A stretch of DNA of 64,000 nucleotides from Pocillopora damicornis (GCF_003704095.1 NW_020845300.1:1054001-1118000); one strand, 5' to 3'; counted from the first letter of the stretch, positions 49,723 to 62,750 are shown. Notes: generated by a model not told the origin, from the letters alone. Numbers and translations are program-made.

Positions 49723-52700
49723 NNNNNNNNNNNNNNNNNNNNNNNNNNNNNNNNNNNNNNNNNNNNNNNNNNNNNNNNNNNNNNNNNNNNNNNNNNNNNN
49801 NNNNNNNNNNNNNNNNNNNNNNGGTAGTAATACTCGTAGTAGCTTCATGGCACAGAAACCGGGATGAGCTCCAGCTTGATGGGTCACTGGGCTCGAGTGT
49901 AGTACCTTTTATTTACAAGTAACTCCGTCAGATTTCCTGAAAGTCTACCGGTTGTAAAAATGAAGTTTTCTGCCTATGAAGTCAACACAGTCCTTTTTGC
50001 CTGGCATATTTTCAACAAAAAGGGTAGCTTCGACTTTAGCCACATGGTTTCTCACTATAATATACCCGTTTCAGTAACACTACGCTTCGAGCCAATGGTA
50101 CAGAAGGTGGTTTATGCAAATCGAGATTAAAATTTATTGCTCGGTTTTGAATGCTTTGGCATAAAACCCTCATGCTTTGGCTAAAATATTAATACATAAG
50201 CTAGCATAATTGATATGTCTTGCGATTTTTCATGACAGGAACAGAGACAAGCCACAAGGGAGAATGTTGAACGAAAGCAAGCACGCACGTCCGATGAATT
50301 GGAGGTAAATGTTTGCGCTAAAAAATTAATTTTCCATTATATGCGAGTAAAATCTTGCCATTTGGGTTCTTCTTCTACAAAACTAAAATATAAATAAGAC
50401 CGTTCTTATTTGTGTTTTAACTTTATTAAGCCATCTTTATTAGTGAAATATTTGGCTATTTTCGGTCCGAGTTTCGTAAAAACCTAAACCGAAGTTGTCA
50501 CACCTTCACCAACAAGAAAAAGGAGAATCTCGCCAGGAGCCAATGAGAACTCGAAGAAAAAACAGGGAACTTATTGAAGCGCGAGAAAACGTGGGTGATT
50601 AAGTCACCAATGGTTTTCGTTTTACATCTGATCTGAAAGTCAGTCCAAATTAGTCATGACCATGGCCAGTATGGTCAAGGTTATCCTTGCATGTTCGAAC
50701 TAAAACGTGGATCACCAAGTCATGATTTGTTTGAATCTGATTTGTTGACAGGGCGTTTGTAGACCAATAACAGTGCACAGTGAAGTAAAACAAGCACAAC
50801 CCAGATTACATTCTGCTCAGTATAAAATTTCTTCGCAAATTTACAGCATCTTAAATGTTTTTCAACAGGAAGAAGAAGAGCATGAAGAGGGCCACGAGTC
50901 AGATTCTGATGATGAGGAAACCGTCCTTTATAATCCTAAAAATTTACCTCTTGGATGGGACGGAAAGGTACCTCCTTTGCCTCACATCTGGGTTGTGCAT
51001 GATGCTAAACTCTAGACTACTCTATGAACGTACTGACGGTGGTGTTTTCAATGTTTTTATTTTCTAGCCTATTCCATATTGGCTGTATAAGTTGCACGGG
51101 CTGAATATAAGCTACAGTTGTGAGATATGTGGCAACTTCACTTACAGGTTTGAGCAACGTGCAATATTTGAAAATCAGTGGACGTTGATTTTTGATTTTT
51201 GATTTTATGCGTAGAGGAGTTTTCCGCTGAACATTTTTCTTAATATACCATACAATGTGTCCTACCGAGTTCAAAGGGGTGAAATAGACGTTTTCCACGG
51301 CAAGAGTGCACAAGTTGTTCGAGTTAAAACAAAGTTTGTCGGCAGTTATCCCATGTTTACTATATTTTTATCATGTGTCACTTGCCAATATTGGAATAAG
51401 AATTTTTGTCTTTTGCTTAGTTAGAATTTAGGAATTTGTCATTGTAGATGTTCCATTTTTAAGGAAGCTAATGATAATATTTGTTCGTTGCAGGGGTCCA
51501 AAGGCGTTCCAGAGGCATTTCGCGGTATGATGAATCTCTTTTAGCGTTACTGCAAGCTTTATATTTGCACTAGAGCTCTATGACGGTCTTGCGGTATTTC
51601 TTATTTTTTTATGTAATGTCAACGTTCGCACCAAGTTAAGTCGTAAGAAAGGTTAAGGTGCATTTATCGTTAAAAACCAAAACCAAATGAATCACAACGG
51701 CCTATCAGAACACGATGGCAACGTCACGTCAAGCCAATGAGATTTCAAAGTGAAAATATGTAACCCGCGTGAAGCGCGCGACGGGAAAAGGCGAGTGATC
51801 AAATTACGATTGGTTTTACATGTTATTGTTATAGATTATGGCGCGAGTTTTCTCGACCAATTAGAGAGACGATGGGGAAAAATCATTACAATCCATGATT
51901 TATACTTTCGACACTAGTTTGAAAATTGAGCCCAGCTGGAAGACTCTATAGCGTTTTATAATTTTAAATTTGTCGTTTATTACATAGGAATGGCGTCACG
52001 CACACGGCATGAGATGTCTTGGAATCCCAAATACAGCGCATTTTGCCAACGTCACTTTGATAGAAGATGCTGTTGCATGTAATGATCGATTTCTTCCATC
52101 GTTTTTAATGATAATTAATAATTATTTGTAGGGTGCTCATGAACGCTTGTTGCGATGAGTCCATCGCAGTTTACATCGTTTAAACCGTGTGTTTGTGAGT
52201 GGTGCTCGTGAGTGAGTGGGGAATAGGGGAACATTTATACAGGAATGCAAAAATGCTAGCGAGACATTGAGGCATAGAGTGTGAGCGTCCGCATCCAGCA
52301 GAGTGTATTTTGTTATCTGTACACTCAACCGTAGTACAGTAAAACGTACCAGACCTTTAATTTTGTGGGCTTTAGTAATGGTGAAACATAAACTGCATGG
52401 GACTTACTGTCGGAAGCTCTAAGGCGCAGCTCTCTAGCTTGTCAGCTTGGAGATAAGAATCACTATGAAAGACACATACTCTTCTTACTTATACCACAGA
52501 TGCCTGGGTTTTTTATTAACACTAAGCTGTAGTTGTCCAAAAGTGCCTCATGTTCTTCCCTTATTTTTGCTGTAAACGCAACTTGTTTCTTTTTCATTAC
52601 CGTTTTTTATTTTTTATTTTTTTTATTTTTTATCACAGTATGGCATAAGTTGAAGGCTGTGAAGGCCAAAGAACGTTGGCTTCCTGATCAAGAGGTAAAT

Positions 52701-53396
52701 TCGTCCAAAGTTTCGAGTTTTGCTGACTTTCCTGTCTGTCCGTTGTTTAGTTACGGAAACTCCTTTCTTGGTAGATGCAACCACTGTTTTGATTCAGTGA
52801 AATTGGTATTGATAACATGCCCACATATGGTCTTTTTTGGTTGTGGTATTTTTATTTCTAAGACACACACAGTGGCAAAGGAACACTGAAGCGTCATACG
52901 ACGACCCCTTATGCTAACTGGTGTTTAGGCGTGTATTTCATGACCGATTCCGCCGGGTGATCTGTGTGATTATTGAACTTGAGAAGTTATTTATTCGTGC
53001 GATAAGACATTGGACAGAAAAGAAATTTTCACCTTATTTCTCTTGAGAAGTTTTTCGAAAGCCTCCACTAAATTCACCTAGTCTTCGTGGTTCCCATTCG
53101 AACATTTTAATTGTGGTGAGTGTTTAATCTTATGGCAGAGTGAAGTAACTTTTGATAATTTGAAGATGATCGAGTGATGACTTGGTCTGCTTTCCACCTT
53201 TCCTTTGAGATGTTATGAAACGCTTAGCCCGTGACATCTCAAAGAGCAACAGCGAAGGGGACTGGTGATAACGAGCGATTGCAAGGTCTTAATCACCTTA
53301 CTTTGATTCTGTTTGTAGGAAGAATACGAAGATTCTCTTGGAAATGTTGTAAACAAACGGACGTTTGAAGATCTGAGTCGTCAAGGATTGTTGTGA
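44383..53396 (+). CDS. SF3A3: Splicing factor 3A subunit 3 (SF3a60/PRP9); internal exon(s) lost in an assembly gap
   Basis: Exons 44383-44478, 44888-44935, 45793-45845, 45957-46062, 46483-46555, 46737-46828, 46979-47061, 48018-48090, 48466-48531, 48797-48865, 49349-49416, [gap], 50239-50304, 50869-50967, 51068-51147, 51494-51524, 51988-52078, 52639-52694, 53319-53396. Motifs [103 protein letters not shown]. Confidence 0.96.
47204..47407. mobile_element. piggyBac-like MITE (subfamily B)
   Basis: ttaa flanks; the body matches 10169-10372. Confidence 0.7.
49676..49822. repeat. (ATT)n microsatellite running into an assembly gap (N 49723-49822)
   Basis: Directly visible. Confidence 0.95.
50505..50830. 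repeat. Dispersed CCAAT-rich interspersed repeat
   Basis: The units agccaatgagaactc / gcgcgagttt / ccaatca recur at ~9866-9920, ~23430-23605, ~51670-51930, ~54700-54890, ~54935-55167 and ~56045-56290. Confidence 0.6.
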
Positions 53397-53701
53397 AGAT
53401 GTCACATTCCTCGTTTATTTCTCCTATTCTCAAAATTTGTATTTTTTAACGTAACGAAGCAGTGTCATTCTCTTAGTTGTTTGGTGTGCATAGCGATAAA
53501 CACTTTTATTTCATGGAAATTCATCTTATGTGTCAAGTAACTTACAAATTACGACTGTGAAATGTAACACTTTTGCGTGGTCTAAAGCAAGATAAAAAAA
53601 GCTTCAATTATTACATGTAAGTGGTGATTACACAAACTGTGTCTGGAACAACACTCAAAAGACCTTTTAATTCAGTGTTACAAAGTAAAAAGCAAATGCT
53701 T

Positions 53702-56700
53702 TTAATCTTGCGCCGAATTCGAGATCTTCTTGGATTCACTTGTTTTGATAATGACATAGTCTTGGTGGAAAACTCCCCTCACTCCGTCACACGTGCCCTA
53801 CGAAGAAATTAAGATATTTTGTGTAAAAGAATTATTGATGGTGCTGTTAAAGAAGGGTTTTGCGCGCCCTAGTTATGCGAAATTTTGGATGACATTCCTC
53901 GAGTCACCGACATTCTGGTCTTCTTTCTTTCAAAATGAAATTCCATGCCTTCTGGACACGAACACGCGTTTACAACTACTCTTTCTTGATGTTAATGAAG
54001 CTGGAAAAAAAAATAGGTCAGCGAGAGAAAAAATTGTCATACAAAACTTTGCAATTCTCTACCGCTTGCTTGCTTCTTTCCTTAGTGGGCGATGAAAAAA
54101 GAAAGACGAGAATAGGCATTGATCGCGTGTGATAGGATGCCAGTATCAAAATGTAACTTTGGGAAGGTAATTTAAGCTTCTGACTTGCTTGGACCGACGG
54201 ATTCTTTCCTTTATCAATGTGCCTCCAGATTTCTGACATTGGCTGAATCAGCTTATGCTGATCTGACATGGAACGTTTGGTGCAGTGTGGGAAAGTGCAA
54301 AGTGCACTTGATAACATTTCAGTTTGTCCAATTTTTACCTCGTACCACCCCTCCTTGTCGTCGACTCTAACAATATCTTGCACGATCTGTCCCTTTGCTA
54401 AACAAAGCTCGTTGTCATTGGTTGGTTCATAAGATGTATGTATGTAGCCATGAGAATTCCGTCGCCAGAATCTTTCGACAGTGATCCCTGAAAAACAAGG
54501 AAATAATTATGACGAGTGGGAATTTGTTTGCTAAACTGCAGAGAGTAAAGCTTTGAGACTGGGCCTCTAAGATGCCCTGTGACACAAGTTATTTCCAGAT
54601 CACTGTGGGTTACGAGATGTTCGAGTGAGCCTGAAATAACAGATCCCTTGTCACTAATTTTAGTCCCGTAGATACTGTGAGCTCTAGAGAGCCTACAACA
54701 AAGTAATAACAACGGCCAATCAGAAGACAGGAAAAATACTTCAAAGAGGCAATAAGAACTAGACACTGAAGACAAAAAGTATTGCATCTGATTGGTTGAG
54801 AGAGTGGCGCGAGTTTCCTTGAACAATCAGAGCGAAGTGGAACAAAACCAATGAAATCTTGGATTACTTTGGACACAATTGAAAATTTCTCTTAAAGCTT
54901 GAAGATAACGCCTTAGGAATACTACCTAGATATCTCATTTCAATTGCGAGTCGTGGAACCAAACTAAAAGTAATCATAACCAATTAGAAGAAAGAAAATT
55001 AGCATAAGGAGCCGATGGAAACCCGAAGAAGAATTCAGGAAACTGCCTCGAGCGCGGGATAGGAAAGGTGAGAGATTATCTCAAATTTTTAAGGCCAATC
55101 GTTCAAAGAAGTGAAGCAAACTCAATGCAATTTCGGATTACTTTGGACACCCGATTGAAAATTGCTTTATGAGGATGTCAGTCCCTTGTCTTTTAGAGGA
55201 GTATGCGTCTATTGCAATACTTACAAAGTGTTTTGAACGTTTGACTCACGCGCCCTACACTTCCAGTCCCGGCAATGAAACAACTCCATATTATCAGCAG
55301 CCAGCCAATCAGAAGGGTGAAACCCATCACCCCCAAACCCTGATTGGTCAGTTAAGAAACCAGTTCTACTCAGTGAAGAGGAGATGATAAGATTACTTCA
55401 TCTCGTCTCGGAGGCAGGCATTAACAATTAATTTCTGTGAAAATTGATCTTGGAGTCAATTTGATTCTAGGTAACGATTAATTCTCTGAAATAATCAGGC
55501 CCTTAAATTTGACAAATTGTATCGACTAACTCACAGATTAAGTGAAAGTGAATCGGGCCTTCGCTGTATCGAACTAATGTTATGTTAGATTTTGAGTATT
55601 TCCTCTCCATCTGGATGATTTTTACAATAATGTCGTGAGAAATTCCGTCGAAATGAAGTGTTTTAAGGTGAAGGATACAGCTTGCATGAGGGCTCTTTGA
55701 TAAGCCCTCTTTGATTTCTCGATCTTTACATTACACCAGTCGTAGATATACCGCAAGTCTTTCTTTGGCACATTGTTAGTCTTTGTCTTCCAGCCTTCGT
55801 TGCAAACACAAACCGAACCAACGCGCCGGCCGTGATGACAGTTGAGTGGCACCTGTCAATCAAACAAACACTGTCATTTTGATAGATTGTCTCGTGCCTT
55901 GAAGTTAAGTTTGGAGGATAAATCGGAAACAGAATACTCAGTAGAGTGTCTTGGAAACACATGGGTTGAAGGCTTCAAGATCAGACTACGCCCTGTTGTC
56001 GGTGAGGGCCATATCCAGTCATTATCTCCTTGATAGAGTAATTTTCGATTGCGGGTCAGACTGCATTGGTTTCTTTTTTTAATACGCTATGTGATTGGTC
56101 CAAAAATTTTGCGCTAGCCTCTCAACCAATCGCGAGTCGGTTATCCGTGTCATCCCGCCATCCTCTTAAGAAATCATGCATGCATAAACCAAACCGATCA
56201 TCAGGACTTGCTTCTCTGCGTTTTTCTGCACTCGAGGTTGTTGACATTGTTTCGTTGACCGTTTTTCTTTAACAACCGCTCTGATTACTTTGTGAGATAA
56301 AGGGGTTCAAATATACCGGACATTCTGAGAAAATTAAAATTTTCAGCTCACCGGGTTTATTTCTTTGATATCCTCTAAGGTAAACTTCAATTTCGCCAGT
56401 TTGCTTCTCTCCATGTTGTCATAGATCTGCTTTTTCTGCTTTTTGGTCAGCGTAGGGCTTACCAGACTTTTGCAGTCATTATAGTCTTTGTCAAATGCCT
56501 GTTGCAACGTAAAACAATATCAAGCAAATTATGCCACGCTTTCTTTTAAGTCGCCCTTAAATCCTCCCCAAAATGCGTTGAACAACCCGGGCGAGTGGTC
56601 GTGGGCTTGACGCGATGGAAAAGTTTCCCAATGCTTTCTAGTTTTAGTTTTAGTTTTTCGCACGATTTAAGGACTGCGCCTTTCCTCTGCAATACTGCAT

Positions 56701-59629
56701 AAATGACGCACTTACAATTTCAGGTAGCTCTCCTTCCTTGCCCTTTGTGTAGCACTCGTGAATAACTTCACACTTTCCTGTCGAGTTTTTGAAGAAATTT
56801 CTCCATCCATTGTACTTCTCAACGCAGTCCACAGGCTCACAATTTTTCCTGGGGTCCTGGTAACAAAAATCATCACGATGTTAGGAATTATCCTCTAAAT
56901 CAGCAGGTTTCAGACGGTCTTATTCCTATTAAGGTGACTAGATTCTGCTAAATCCTCCCTCTTCTCATTGCGTACTCAAAAAGCATCAAGAAAAAGTCCA
57001 TCATTAGAACTGTACGGTCATTCCGGTGGATTTAATAGTACCGGAGGAAGAGAAATTGAGAAGACCTGTTCATTTAATTTCCGCTTTTTGAACTTTTTCG
57101 ACGGTCATCGACAAGGACGGCTGAAAAAGGACGGTAGAAAAATTCAAAAGAGCTTGAAAGCAAGTAATGAAGAAACATAACAAAAGAAGAGTCCAACAAA
57201 GGGAATACTTTATCGAAATGTACTAATCACGTGTGTCGTAAAACACATTAATACATTTTTAGTAAATGGGAGTTATTTTCATCTTTTTCGTTAGACCTAC
57301 ATTAACCTTTGAAGAAAGATAAGTGAGACCATACGTAGATTTTTCGATTCGTATTTTCAGTGGACGCGCTTCTAAACTATATATTTCACAACTAGAAAAA
57401 TCTGGACATCCTTGTAAACTAACCCTATCAACTCCTCGGCATTTTCTGAAACTGTCACCTCCAAACCCGATAACTGTAAAGAAAAAAAGCACTCTCTTTC
57501 ACTTATCTGATACTTCTTATTTACTTCCCTCTTTGCCTGAAACACAAGGTTTCCGAGTCTGAAAACACTATACAGCTAGAGTGTTGCTATTTTAGGTGAA
57601 CTATTTTTCAATTAATTGAATGTTATTTATTCGTTCTGCTGTGATGGTTCAGTGACTGGTTGGGAACTGTAACTTATTTTGTAACATATTTGAGGACCTG
57701 TAACTCATTTTATTTACTAACCAACTTACTGATGGGTAAAGGGCAAATGTGGAATAGTGTTAACCAATGACTACAAATTGATGCTGATATCCAAATTTTT
57801 GAGAAATCTATGACCCTGAGTTTAACACAGGAACTTCAGGAAAATGTCAACATAAAGTTTTGCCTTGGAGACCTAAACTCAAACAAGAGCTCTATCCAAC
57901 ATGATTCTAGGTAACAAATAATTCAAATTCTGTTTCACTCTAACCATATGAATAAATCAGGAAGAGATTTACCATCTAACCAAGATTTTTTCTTTGGTTC
58001 TGTGGTATTAAATCTGACTCTGTGTCGAAGCTGTTTCTCCCCAGCCATGAAGGTAAAGTCACAATTTCCAATTCTGTCCATTGGGTACTGTTGTGAGACA
58101 GGGCAAAGAGTATTCATCACATTGTACAGGGCAGTTTCTTCAGATATTTCAGTAGAGCTTATTGTTACCTTCCCATCTCCAGTGACTTTATTATCAAGCA
58201 TTGCTTCTAAAGGCACTTAAAATACTGAACAAGGCTTAAAAGAGCTAATTTTCTCTGATTGGGAGGTCGATTCCAAGCCAATAACTTACATCAAAACAAC
58301 AAAATTCAAGTCAACCTAGGGCAGACTCTCAACCAATAAACATATCAAAAAATTGAGTGAAGTCTTGCCTGACCCTTTAATTCCCAAGATCTCATTAGCG
58401 ATTCTCTTTGCTATCTGTCACATAATTCTTATGATGTTAGTTCTGAGAATTTGGTATTGGATCAACTAATAATCTTCTAGTATATATGTTTCTTTATCCT
58501 CATCACTTGCCTGCTTAATATTGTATTGGTATAGTAAGGAGAAATTCTGTCTTGGTCACTTGTGGGAGTTAAAGGGTTCATGGATGATTTTGTGTTTGTG
58601 TGGTGCTTTGTGTCCCTTATCACCAAGTCACACAACACCTGATTGATGTACCTCTACATTAAATTATTTGTAAAATCGACTTTTGATCCTTCTGTGTGAA
58701 TAAGAAAAAACAGGTAAACAAGTAAACATTCATCAGTGAGGAACTTACTTTGTTTGGAAATACATACGAGATATTTTCGCGTTTCAGTGATGGAAGCTGT
58801 ATTTCATTGCCACCTATAAGCTCCATGGACTGATAAAAAAAATAAATGAAAAATAGTTAACAGATATTTGAAGTTGTATCCTATCACTCATCAAAGAAAC
58901 GGTTTTCTCAGAGGTTTTATAAAAATATTCCAACCTTACAATCTAGGTCGTTTTTGTCAACTTGCCAACAACATCTCGGTTTTTTCGGGGTTATTGTGAG
59001 AGTTTTCTTCGCATCGTTGGCAAGTGTTATGTCTGAAGAGAAATAAGATACATCGTGACAAAAACACATCACATGATCGCGATAAATCTTCTCTCATTTC
59101 AAATGGATTGCAAACGAAACAGAGTCACTCGACGTTTTGTGTAAGTAAGGCCATGATCAGTTTTGTAGCTACTTACAGAATTGGATTCCAAAACTTTTAG
59201 GATTTACTGGAAAGACACCCGAACGCTGAAAAAAAAATTACTATAATAAGAAACATTTTTCGGTGGGGAAATTAACCGTATTACTGGTACGGAATAATTC
59301 AAGCAACTGGCGATGGTTAATCATCAGGGATCATGTCAATAAAGGATCATGTCAATAAATGAAGACCCAAACCGCAAAATTCACGATTTGCAGAAATCGG
59401 GAGTTCACTTCTTTCCAAAACGATGAAATAATCTCATTCTTTCACCAGCTGAAGTTTTCCGATTAAAGATAGGCCTCTGAATCAAAAGCATATATAGCTT
59501 AGCCTGTGTTAATTCTTAGCGGCTGTTTGAACAATAATGAACTTACACGTTACCGCTTACCTCTACATGAATTTTACCTAGTATTTGTGAAAGAAAGCAG
59601 AGCCAAAATATTCGAAACACAGTTTTCAT
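53702..59629 (-). CDS. Uncharacterised type I membrane protein, ~427 aa: signal peptide, Cys-rich and EGF-like ectodomain, TM helix, cytoplasmic SH3 domain; 12 exons
   Basis: Exons 59629-59561, 59225-59177, 59032-58935, 58829-58749, 58087-57973, 57473-57424 (alternative donor at 57307), 56856-56716, 56498-56352, 55852-55679, 55339-55225, 54487-54339, 53797-53702 join into 1284 nt with no internal stop. Signal MKTVFRIFWLCFLSQILG; EGF-like CHHG...CVCNEGW...C; TM GLGVMGFTLLIGWLLIIWSCFIAG; SH3 HTSYEPTNDNELCLAKGQIV...EGWYEGTCDGVRGVFHQDYV. The 5' exons are less certain. Confidence 0.75.
55340..55678 (-). other. U12-type GT-AG intron in the EGF-TM-SH3 gene
   Basis: Minus-strand donor GTATCCTTC; branch TTCTTAAC (55358-55351) about 12 nt before the CAG; phase-0 join MQA|GLGV. 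Confidence 0.82.
58373..58576. mobile_element. piggyBac-like MITE (TTAA family)
   Basis: TIR ccctttaattccca/tgggagttaaaggg; the body matches 937-1135. Confidence 0.75.
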
Positions 59630-60608
59630 CTCTCTAACGTTCTGAGCATTGAAGAAGAAACGTAAGCTGTGAAAATGAAAAGTTTGCGAGGTTTTTTCCT
59701 TCTCGTTTAACACTCTGTACTTCACGCGCCATTCTCGTCCCCAGAGCCAATCGTTTCTCTTAGTTGGGGTAGGCTCTGAGTACGAGGGATGCATGGATTA
59801 CGTCTTTGCAAAATAACTCAGGTTTACCTTCCTCTTCCCTCACTTTCCTTTCCCCACCCCCAAAATGATTGTATTCATATCGCTGTTTGAACAAGCGAAA
59901 TGTTCTCAGCTCTCCGCTTCCCCCCAAATGCCCCAGAGCTCTCTTGGCTCCAATTATCGTGGCACATTTGAATTGTAATAGATAATGAAAGGCAATGGGG
60001 GCTTCAGATTCATGTTGGACATTTTGAAGAGTCTAGATAGTAAGGTCAAATCCTAAAATTGATTATTTAATCTGCTTACTTTGCAGCACTTTTGTAATGT
60101 GGCTAGCTTTATGGCCTGAATTCCAACTGAGGTCAACCTCTTAATTAAGAGCACAGGGTTGGGTAAAGAGATTACTGACTCTGGGTCTTTTAGGGGGCTA
60201 AGAACCATTTTCAGGCTCAAATAACCAGACGGATACCTTTATTATAATCATCCTTGTTGGGGGTTGGGGAGGAGGGGAAGGAAAAAAAATAAATTAAAGG
60301 AAGGAGAATGAAAAGCAACAAAGTTGACAAAGACATGACAGAGATGGTTTTTTTATCATTATGGGGCTGGTTCCATCATTGACTACTTCTGTAACCAATC
60401 ATAAAAATCATGCAAGGCAAACAATTAAAAAGGAAAAATTGGCAAAAAAAAGTGTGTTATTTATTGAATAAAAAAGTTTATGTCATACCAAATATCAAAG
60501 ACATGTGGCACTGACATGGAAAAGTTTTTCATGATGAGAAAAAAGCTGCAGACTTGCAATTTATTGAATTCGTTTTCAGTTCTGTTTATTTTCTAAATAC
60601 CTAAATTG

Positions 60609-62264
60609 CTATTTTTGTTGTTGCTGTTGTTGATGTTGATTATATTCATCCTCTAAAGAAGGTTCATTCTGCTGATTGACTTGTTCTTCATTTCCTTGTA
60701 CACCCTCAGAATTAGATTCTTGCTGGCTTTGTTCTTGATGTTGTTCTTCTTGTTGCTCCTGTTGGTCTTCCTGTTCATGTTGTTCATTCTGTTGGTTTTC
60801 CTGTTGAGGTTGGTGTTGCTGTTGATCTTGTTCTTGGTTTTCTTGTGGTTTATTTTCATCCTGTTCCTGATTATGCTCTGAAGACTGTTGATTTTGTTGT
60901 CGTTGATTAAATTCTTGCTCTAGAGATGATTGTTCCTGTTGCTGTTCTTGCTCTTCCTGGGTTTCTTGTTCTCCCTCCTGAGGCTTGTCCAGGTCTGTCA
61001 TGAATGAGTTTACTTTTGAGTTCATCAGCTCAATAAAATCAATCATACCATCATCATCTCTGTCGTGTTTCATCAGAAGTTCATCTACAATGGTTTCTGC
61101 TTCATGCTCAAGGAACATGCGCCCTCCTTCTTTGAATTCACCTTTGCTATCATCTTCTGTGTGAAAATCTGTCAGTGCATTCATCCATTCTAAGCCATCT
61201 AGCTTTTGATTGTCATCATAATCATGAAGCTTGAAGAAATAAAATATACCTGCAGACAATAATAATCATAATGTTAACCCTTCCTTGCTGTTCCCCTTTT
61301 TTGCATACATGCATGCATTACAAGCATTACTCAGGGAAATCTGCCATCATGCCCACTGCTAAAATCCATGGTTTACTTTTTCACTCATAATCTCAAATTT
61401 TGAGCATCCTTCCAGGTGTATCTTGTGGTTAATGCACTTCTACATTGTTGGTGCTTTATTCTGGTTCTCTTTTTTATTGATTTAGTATTGGGTATCATGA
61501 TAAGGACCTATTCCTTGTTTCCTGTGTAACAGAGACAACAAAAAACAACAACAGCAAAAAACATACAAGAACTTGGAATACTCAGAGTCATCCTTCAATA
61601 AACTAGATAGTTCTCAAGGGGAGTAGGAAAAGTTTTCTTGTGGAGGGTTTTCAAATGCAATGTTGCTGAATCCTTTAAACCCACATAGTAACCAGCATCC
61701 AGTTTCTTCTAACAGTAACACTTCTTAATCATTCATTAAGATCACGAGAATAAAAGAAATGGTTGTCAATCCATGAGGCTTTGATTATCAGAAACATTCT
61801 CCTTATCAGTGCCAATGGAAATGTGTAGAGAAGAGTATAGAGAATATCAATACTGTTGTTACAGTGTAAAGGGTTACAATTTGGTCTCAACAGTACCTTT
61901 AGAATTGTCACCATTTTGCACATCTTTTATTTCTTGGTCTTGTCCAGTTACTTCCCCTAAGTGTTTTTTTATATGTCTGCAACATAACAACAGCAGGTAT
62001 GAGAAAACAAGAAGCAAAAGGGAAGGAAGGTAATATGAAACAATAATTATTGTTGAAATGCTACAGGGCAATTGTATTTCCTGGGAAATATGTTTTCAAC
62101 TGAGTCTATATTTTTCAAATCAAGTTTTAATTTACAAAGTAGATTTTAATGCTTTCTTGTGTAGGAGCCTTTAACAATATGAAAAAATTCTAAAAATAAA
62201 AGTGAAATACCTCAAACCTTCTCCATCCAGATCCATTCTGTCAGCTAGATGAGCAAGTAAATGT
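60609..62264 (-). CDS. MCFD2: MCFD2-like secretory-pathway EF-hand protein, 3' portion, with a long Gln/Glu-rich tail
   Basis: Last exon 61249-60609: YFFKLHDYDDNQKLDGLE (EF1) and IVDELLMKHDRDDDGMIDFIE (EF2). Upstream HxxxHL exons at 62264-62218 and 61976-61897. The start exon was not identified (gap at 62651-62750, or beyond the window). Confidence 0.8.
61671..61873. mobile_element. piggyBac-like MITE (subfamily B, diverged)
   Basis: tcctttaaac...gtgtaaaggg termini; the body resembles 10169-10372. Confidence 0.6.
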
Positions 62265-62650: not shown

Positions 62651-62750
62651 NNNNNNNNNNNNNNNNNNNNNNNNNNNNNNNNNNNNNNNNNNNNNNNNNN
62701 NNNNNNNNNNNNNNNNNNNNNNNNNNNNNNNNNNNNNNNNNNNNNNNNNN
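62651..62750. other. Assembly gap (100 N)
   Basis: N run. Confidence 1.

Follow-up and report, generated by a model that had tools for sequence, protein, structure and literature searches.

The window analysed here is a 64,000-nucleotide stretch of the Pocillopora damicornis genome (GCF_003704095.1 NW_020845300.1:1054001-1118000), and its minus strand holds, between positions 59629 and 53702, one expressed protein-coding gene with 12 exons and one U12-type intron that encodes a 427-residue type I membrane protein. Taking sequence, a family alignment and AlphaFold together, we are highly confident that this protein has a signal-anchored, glycosylatable, disulfide-rich ectodomain, one transmembrane helix and a cytosolic C-terminal SH3 domain. 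The explanation we favour as a whole, and consider on balance probable, combines this anatomy with an ancestral fusion of receptor and SH3 domain and a role as receptor and adaptor in one chain; the receptor-adaptor mechanism itself is tentative, with the odds leaning somewhat against it. As a rule, a single-pass receptor relies on proline motifs in its tail to recruit SH3 adaptors. The coral receptor carries its own SH3, in an arrangement that appears to have been kept, introns included, since before the cnidarian-bilaterian split.

Gene structure and domain architecture

The original prediction described a hidden gene whose 12 exons splice into an open frame of 427 residues. Rebuilding the exons directly from the sequence gave this frame: exons of 49-174 nucleotides (nt), measuring 69, 49, 98, 81, 115, 50, 141, 147, 174, 115, 149 and 96 nt from exon 1 to exon 12, join into a coding sequence of 1284 nt, or 427 codons and a TAA stop at 53704-53702. 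All introns of the gene have GT-AG boundaries. An alternative, plausible set of donors closes the frame, and only the adopted set leaves it open.

In public RNA runs of corals and of marine metatranscriptomes, about 0.21-0.25 of the region's words are present, which is the share expected for exons alone. Junction support in RNA had been set as a check on the gene model, with a separate transcript for the SH3 exons as the outcome that would overturn it, and we placed contigs of four RNA runs from four studies on positions 53650-59640. All 11 junctions are found at the exact modelled positions in two of the runs, X1 and X8, and 9 of the 11 in X12 (three studies). One X8 contig (record 20) carries exons 7-12, an X12 contig (record 7) spans exons 9-12, an X1 contig (record 1) spans exons 10-12, and further contigs in X1 and X8 join exons 1-7. 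The SH3 exons lie on the same contigs as the transmembrane and ectodomain exons and therefore belong to the same transcript. Record 20 of X8 extends about 1.8 kb beyond the stop codon, and since this stretch overlaps the 3' end of the convergent gene SF3A3, it should not be read as a 3' untranslated region (UTR). An Rfam scan of the gene region returned no match.

The gene is not hidden. It is annotated in RefSeq as LOC113671876, with the product XP_027043934.1 ("uncharacterized protein"), which is identical to our protein across all 427 residues; what is added here is independent confirmation of the exon structure of a gene already annotated, though uncharacterised. Searches used individual exons, together with two database proteins as equivalents of the spliced protein: XP_027043934.1 (P0047) and P0044, a 427-residue open reading frame (ORF) from a transcript assembly that is 98.4% identical to the model without gaps. 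The P0044 cluster holds four named entries, XP_027043934.1, RMX46005.1 (pdam_00002087), P. verrucosa XP_058950624 and P. meandrina CAH3120599.1, and independent 427-residue models exist in three Pocillopora species. XP_027043934.1 is 482 residues long, the 55 extra N-terminal residues arising from an upstream in-frame ATG at 59794 and an open stretch of 55 codons on the minus strand (59630-59794). This stretch is probably 5' UTR and not coding, because all orthologues begin at the signal peptide; the P. verrucosa and P. meandrina models and P0044 are 427 residues long and lack the extension. The 482-residue RefSeq start buries the signal peptide. Exons 7 and 11 are each single-copy in the genome (234,350,878 bases in 4,393 contigs), and searches with these two exons returned no paralogue in the same genome and no lineage-specific expansion. 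A literature search with twelve gene identifiers and with the architecture found no relevant paper.

The predicted order along the chain is signal peptide, immunoglobulin (Ig)-like beta-sandwich, 6-Cys domain, helical spacer, 4-Cys EGF-like module, transmembrane helix and SH3. The protein has 18 cysteines, a hydrophobic N-terminal leader and three N-x-S/T sequons (NIS 91, NTT 126, NST 178), and these sequons are present as first quoted, along with CC-x9-C, FPNKYPMDRIGNC (residues 96-108), the C149...C189 motif and RFWRR (352-356, in a basic juxtamembrane helix). The lone strong hydrophobic span, residues 309-331, is the transmembrane helix (Kyte-Doolittle peak 2.28), which fits a type I protein and agrees with the single-pass topology, Cys-rich ectodomain and terminal SH3 of the original prediction.

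All exons lie on the minus strand. Exon 1 (59561-59629, residues 1-23, start codon 59629-59627) encodes the hydrophobic N-terminus, with the signal peptide MKTVFRIFWLCFLSQILG followed by the first residues of the mature chain, and its junction 59561/59225 is present in RNA contigs. Exon 2 (59177-59225, 49 nt, residues 24-40) contributes the first strand of the beta-sandwich and an SGxxPV motif conserved in the family alignment. Exon 3 (58935-59032, 98 nt, residues 40-72) holds CC-x9-C (C60, C61, C71); its donor, GTTGGA, is weak, yet the junction 58935/58829 is present in X1, X8 and X12 contigs. The SMELIGG motif and the N91 sequon are in exon 4 (58749-58829, 81 nt, residues 73-99), and exon 5 (57973-58087, 115 nt, residues 100-138) brings YPMDRIGNC (C108), the FNTT sequon and the end of the sandwich, whose modelled strands extend to residue 126. 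The 6-Cys domain has its first cysteine, C149, in exon 6 (57424-57473, 50 nt, residues 138-154), its core, DPRKNCEPVDCVEKYNGWRNFF...C...C, in exon 7 (56716-56856, 141 nt, residues 155-201) and its last cysteine, C210, in exon 8 (56352-56498, 147 nt, residues 202-250), which also encodes a K/E-rich helical spacer. Exon 9 (55679-55852, 174 nt, residues 251-308) encodes the 4-Cys EGF-like module and a basic pre-transmembrane segment. Across intron 9 (55340-55678), a U12-type GT-AG intron with donor GTATCCTT and branch site TTCTTAAC, follows exon 10 (55225-55339, 115 nt, residues 309-347), with the transmembrane helix GLGVMGFTLLIGWLLIIWSCFIA and the start of the juxtamembrane region. Exon 11 (54339-54487, 149 nt, residues 347-396) encodes a juxtamembrane helix that is basic and amphipathic (RFWRR) as well as the N-terminal half of the SH3 domain, and the coding part of exon 12 (53702-53797, residues 397-427 and TAA) its C-terminal half and a short tail.

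An AlphaFold model of P0044, built with a 22-sequence family alignment, resolves into the same regions. The beta-sandwich spans 19-129 (predicted local distance difference test, pLDDT, 81-90) and is followed by a small stretch rich in disulfides (149-212), by helices of low confidence (220-245) and by a small beta module (255-292); beyond the long transmembrane helix come a juxtamembrane helix (339-354) and the SH3 barrel (359-414, pLDDT 80-85).

The SH3 assignment is confirmed. On P0044, SH3_2 scores 33.0 bits against a Pfam cutoff of 21.8 and SH3_1 scores 26.1 against 22.9; SH3 alone passes, and no other domain, catalytic or otherwise, rises above threshold. Exon 11 by itself falls short (SH3_1, E 0.0015, 18.5 bits), because an intron splits the domain and this exon holds half of it. 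The nearest PDB sequences are SH3D21, CIN85/SH3KBP1 and CD2AP (E ~1e-7, 31-38% identity). Residues 358-414 are predicted to form the five-stranded beta-barrel of the SH3 fold, with a Foldseek TM score of 0.85-0.92 and a root-mean-square deviation (rmsd) of 0.9 A to the CD2AP SH3; VIA-align gives Z 9.7 and rmsd 1.1 A to the DNMBP SH3, and cortactin and beta-PIX are among the further fold matches of the two methods. Aligned to SH3D21 and CIN85, the coral domain keeps the Tyr of SY, the Trp of GWY and the final Tyr of DYV, and it has in common with CD2AP, CIN85 and SH3D21 the core GW(W/Y)EGxxxGxxGxF. These nearest relatives in sequence and fold belong to soluble adaptors with several SH3 domains, which receptor tails recruit, whereas the coral protein has a single SH3 fused to the receptor.

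A parallel in layout comes from yeast, where the membrane proteins Fus1 and Sho1 use a C-terminal cytosolic SH3 domain to recruit proteins of signalling or polarity. Sho1 crosses the membrane with four helices, whereas Fus1 is likewise single-pass and type I, but its O-glycosylated ectodomain is short. The resemblance is one of architecture only, a membrane-anchored C-terminal cytosolic SH3. Neither protein has the sandwich, 6-Cys and EGF-like ectodomain, and both belong to yeast, whereas the receptor family is animal; no sequence relationship was detected, in that no fungal protein is among the matches of the family searches, which included no direct comparison with Fus1 or Sho1.

The ectodomain matches no Pfam family and no PDB sequence. 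Its beta-sandwich (about residues 19-130) is Ig-like or PapD-like, with four conserved cysteines, and in Foldseek and VIA-align it matches a broad, tied set of structures at Z 10.8-9.3: GH2, transglutaminase barrels, PapD/ASH and HAP2 domain III. The check by AlphaFold and Foldseek suggested earlier thus returned a generic fold for the sandwich and no PDB fold for the 6-Cys domain (residues 149-212). The latter was modelled, with the EGF-like region, from a natural fragment (P0012, pLDDT 79) whose cluster holds a Dendronephthya protein; with this model Foldseek found nothing at E <= 1 and VIA nothing at Z >= 5. The 6-Cys domain therefore has no detectable family or fold in the searched libraries, which is short of proving a new fold. 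In the ESM Atlas, neither the ectodomain nor the N-terminus of P0078, a distant relative described below, gave a usable match.

"EGF-like" proved too strong in the sense first used, although the 4-Cys module so described is present at residues 253-292 (C255, C265, C267, C290). EGF domains have six cysteines paired C1-C3, C2-C4 and C5-C6 and score above their Pfam thresholds. The receptor module has four cysteines, and all its scores lie below curated thresholds: EGF_Teneurin, EGF_2 and EGF_TEN match at E 0.02-0.08 (best 15.2 bits against a cutoff of 24.3), and in the P0012 model it touches epiregulin and HB-EGF at only Z 2.6 in VIA. It has in common with EGF and teneurin-type EGF domains the CxC-GW spacing (C265, C267, G270, W271), and it is best called an EGF-like module and not an EGF domain.

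An animal family and the history of its SH3 domain

With exon 7 as the query, an exhaustive phmmer search retrieved 39 relatives, from which the Pocillopora cluster with P0044 was reached. Judged by sequence, the coral protein belongs to an old, unnamed and uncharacterised family of animal ectodomains that spans sponges, cnidarians, a brachiopod, chelicerates and insects. The original prediction recognised no animal receptor family with this architecture, and we likewise found no characterised orthologue: all members are named only "uncharacterized", "hypothetical" or "SH3 domain-containing". They include Nematostella LOC5503128, Exaiptasia LOC110251858, Lingula LOC106153895/LOC106153904, Hydractinia LOC130645058, Amphimedon LOC100640200 and Tachypleus LOC143228183. 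No vertebrate or other deuterostome member was found in a one-exon search, two word-based family-query searches and a third with P0078, a result that does not establish absence.

Conservation was scored in the 22-sequence alignment, which runs from sponges to arthropods. Fourteen extracellular cysteines are conserved (C60, C61, C71, C108; C149, C160, C165, C183, C189, C210; C255, C265, C267, C290), 10 of them invariant and 4 nearly so, along with several invariant non-Cys positions. The cysteines of CC-x9-C are nearly invariant and those of the EGF-like module invariant; C149, D153, C160, P162, C165, K168, Y169, G171, R173, C183 and C189 are invariant, and the family core motif P-x-x-C-x-x-K-Y-x-G-x-R is conserved. 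P0044 has the full Cys framework and the core motif and a profile E of 3.5e-183.

Members differ in what follows the transmembrane helix. In the lineage survey, which the original prediction had proposed, the ectodomain occurs with an SH3 domain in hexacorals and in Lingula, and without it elsewhere in the family. The SH3 is present in Pocillopora, Porites, Desmophyllum, Exaiptasia, Nematostella and Lingula (older 464-residue model), and passes the Pfam threshold in 9 family members. It is missing from the cnidarians Acropora, Montipora, Dendronephthya (an octocoral), Hydractinia and Clytia, the sponges Amphimedon, Oscarella and Ephydatia, the arthropods Tachypleus, Centruroides, Hermetia and Acanthoscelides, and Oculina, whose 351-residue model has no Pfam domain on record. 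These other members have the same ectodomain and transmembrane position as the coral receptor; the SH3 is confined to hexacorals (not Acroporidae) and Lingula, and the others end in short, acidic or Ser-rich tails.

A more distant relative, P0078, is a 711-residue intronless ORF on a compact eukaryotic contig (L010 973-3108, a Logan contig of SRR28798987), where it adjoins a UCH (ubiquitin hydrolase) gene. It consists of the sandwich, Cys-rich, EGF-like and transmembrane module behind an N-terminal region of 340 residues, for which no PDB or database relatives were found by sequence.

The comparison with Lingula bears most directly on the age of the fusion. The coral and Lingula proteins align collinearly over residues 20-419, through the SH3 (E 3e-43). 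At the Lingula anatina locus (LFEI02000400.1) the ectodomain, transmembrane and SH3 exons lie on one strand in a unit that is tandemly duplicated (L009 6846-11439 and 13927-18494). In NCBI's present annotation the first copy is divided between an ectodomain-transmembrane gene (318 residues) and an SH3 gene (136 residues), which are 348 bp apart. The intron within the SH3 has the same position and phase in both animals (WE/G in Lingula, YE/G in coral). Intron 9 appears to be of the U12 type, as defined by a donor /RTATCCTT and a branch site TCCTTAAC 10-15 nt from the acceptor: in the coral the branch site lies 11 nt before the acceptor and the splice is seen in RNA contigs, and in Lingula a U12-like intron lies at the same place before the transmembrane exon, its donor being GTATCCCT and its acceptor having TTCCTTAAC nearby. 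These intron positions, common to coral and Lingula, make a convergent fusion unlikely, and the joining of receptor and SH3 is most likely older than the cnidarian-bilaterian split. The Desmophyllum (P0042, "VSFIIQ") and Nematostella (P0040, "VSYKKLLLGSG") models appear to read through intron 9, which looks like a typical minor-intron annotation error.

Absence of the SH3 from the other lineages seen would then reflect repeated loss, and gene order in Acropora digitifera provides an example. There no SH3 exon is detectable after the transmembrane exon, and the terminal SF3A3 exon lies about 220 bp beyond it; in the Pocillopora window SF3A3 ends at about 53406, and both SH3 exons lie in the 1.8 kb that separate it from the transmembrane exon. 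Conserved SF3A3 synteny without SH3 exons in Acropora thus shows a deletion and secondary loss. In the Acropora digitifera sequence DF970805.1 the transmembrane exon occurs twice, about 1 kb apart and with identical translation (L002 13299-13367 and 14321-14389), through a local duplication or an artefact of assembly, and no SH3 exons follow.

A proposed receptor-adaptor function and its rivals

In the mechanism that we propose, the ectodomain would bind an extracellular ligand or counter-receptor, the conserved transmembrane helix would pack against itself (oligomerisation) or against a membrane partner, and the SH3 would recruit proline-rich cytoskeletal or endocytic proteins directly to the receptor, so that one chain would serve as receptor and adaptor in adhesion or recognition. 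The SH3 domains of CD2AP and CIN85 read PxxxPR motifs, and the proteins recruited here could be of that type. The transmembrane helix is the best conserved segment of the protein: 16 of its 23 residues (70%) are identical in Nematostella, against 48% overall and 47% in the beta-sandwich, 59% in the 6-Cys domain, 68% in the EGF-like module and 42% in the SH3. Conservation above the protein average suggests that the helix makes contacts within the membrane.

Several points weigh against this reading. The SH3 is dispensable in many lineages. The Pro of the SH3 3-10 helix, conserved in the FPxNF motif of CD2AP, CIN85 and SH3D21, is His in the coral protein; the key Trp gives way to Met in Exaiptasia and to Leu in Lingula, and the Tyr position also varies. 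Canonical ligand residues thus vary among orthologues, and proline-peptide binding is therefore not assured. The signal peptide and topology are predicted from hydropathy and from the logic of cysteines and glycosylation, and the AlphaFold model is of middling confidence overall (mean pLDDT 70, predicted TM score 0.42). RNA contigs, moreover, show presence only, without strand, expression level or transcript ends.

Drifting binding residues would also be expected if the ectodomain and transmembrane helix carried the function, as an auxiliary subunit or co-receptor, and the SH3 were a degenerate, lineage-specific accessory without classical proline-motif binding. We regard this as possible, if somewhat unlikely. 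It would account for a transmembrane helix that outranks the SH3 in conservation, and for an SH3 that was lost repeatedly and is absent in Acroporidae, the octocoral, hydrozoans, sponges, chelicerates and insects; but the SH3 seems to have been kept, intron included, since the cnidarian-bilaterian split, it is above the Pfam threshold in 9 family members and has a well-modelled fold, and in the coral it retains the first Trp and the ALYDY-equivalent Tyr. A simpler objection, that the model fuses an ectodomain-transmembrane gene with a separate SH3 gene, could call on the split Lingula annotation and on Acropora and Montipora models that stop after the transmembrane helix. At the coral locus it is ruled out by single RNA contigs from three studies that span the transmembrane and both SH3 exons with exact GT-AG junctions and a continuous frame, and we give it next to no weight.

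Two functions in the original prediction, gamete recognition or fusion and the sensing of symbionts, found no supporting evidence. A gamete protein akin to HAP2/fusexins, one that has kept a transmembrane helix, a Cys-rich stem and a sandwich like HAP2 domain III, is very improbable. The sandwich does match HAP2 domain III and archaeal Fsx1 (5ow3 Z 10.6, 7p4l 10.4, 7lr3 10.1; 7s0k Z 9.3 with 20% identity), lies like domain III N-terminal to a membrane-proximal region and transmembrane helix, with similar Ig-like topology, and P0078 carries the same module behind its N-terminal extension of unexplained nature. These scores, however, are tied with those of GH2, transglutaminase and PapD-like sandwiches at Z 10.8, and the match is therefore to a generic fold. 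The receptor lacks domains I and II and the fusion loops, and has no sequence or profile similarity to HAP2: the 515-position Pfam HAP2-GCS1 model (PF10699) matches 0 of 22 family members at E <= 10 and does not match P0078 at E <= 1, whereas the same profile finds the coral's own HAP2 on contig C517, a locus without tblastn similarity to the family. We reject HAP2/GCS1 membership on these grounds. Assembly of the receptor transcript in metatranscriptomes of coral samples from several studies also argues against a gamete role. A sensor of dinoflagellate symbionts or microbes, for which only the symbiotic host and the surface glycoprotein nature speak, is if anything less credible still: the same architecture is found in orthologues from Nematostella, which is non-symbiotic, from Desmophyllum, a deep-water coral, and from the brachiopod Lingula, sponges, horseshoe crab, scorpions and insects also have the ectodomain, and the coral gene is single-copy without expansion.

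Bilaterians build receptor and adaptor pairs from two proteins, for example CD2 or nephrin with CD2AP. In a bolder reading, which is doubtful, the family is an ancient metazoan surface system absent from vertebrates that combines a new disulfide-rich fold with an ancestral receptor fused to a CD2AP-type SH3, and would be a one-chain version of such pairs. If this reading is true, the family would define a previously unrecognised pathway of adhesion or recognition in early animals, for which SH3-less variants such as that of Acropora would be natural comparators. The discovery of a hidden gene is not among the results, nor is a demonstrated link to fertilisation or symbiosis. The family, which runs from sponges to insects without a named member or a paper, adds a new domain family for databases, and with orthologues in Nematostella, Exaiptasia, Hydractinia and Clytia it is a tractable target for work on early animal cell-surface signalling.

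Neighbouring genes and repeats

The splicing factor gene SF3A3 occupies the plus strand (exons 45951-53406), convergent with the receptor gene and syntenic with Acropora digitifera. Its last matched exon (about 53313-53406) is about 300 bp from the receptor stop codon, and the 3' ends of the two genes probably overlap, because record 20 of X8 bridges both.

Two introns of the receptor gene contain likely repeats. In intron 4 (about 58372-58578) is an interspersed repeat of about 207 bp, for which a first look at the genome gave more than 3,000 candidates, the scored copies being 85-87% identical. It accounts for the many loose ends in that bin and for RNA word depths as high as 141,000. No Rfam family matched this repeat, which looks like a short interspersed nuclear element or a miniature inverted-repeat transposable element. 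Intron 10 probably contains another dispersed repeat at 54650-54850, where RNA depth is high (about 90-1000) and loose ends occur in four of four runs.

Three runs of 100 N, either assembly gaps or masked sequence, are found at 37699-37798, 49723-49822 and 62651-62750, all outside the receptor gene. Upstream of the gene on the minus strand, an ORF of 216 residues (60609-61259) is EF-hand-like in its N-terminal part (DDNQKLDGLE..., DRDDDGMIDFIE), continues as a long tail rich in Q and E, and is probably the last exon of a gene for an EF-hand protein of the secretory pathway.

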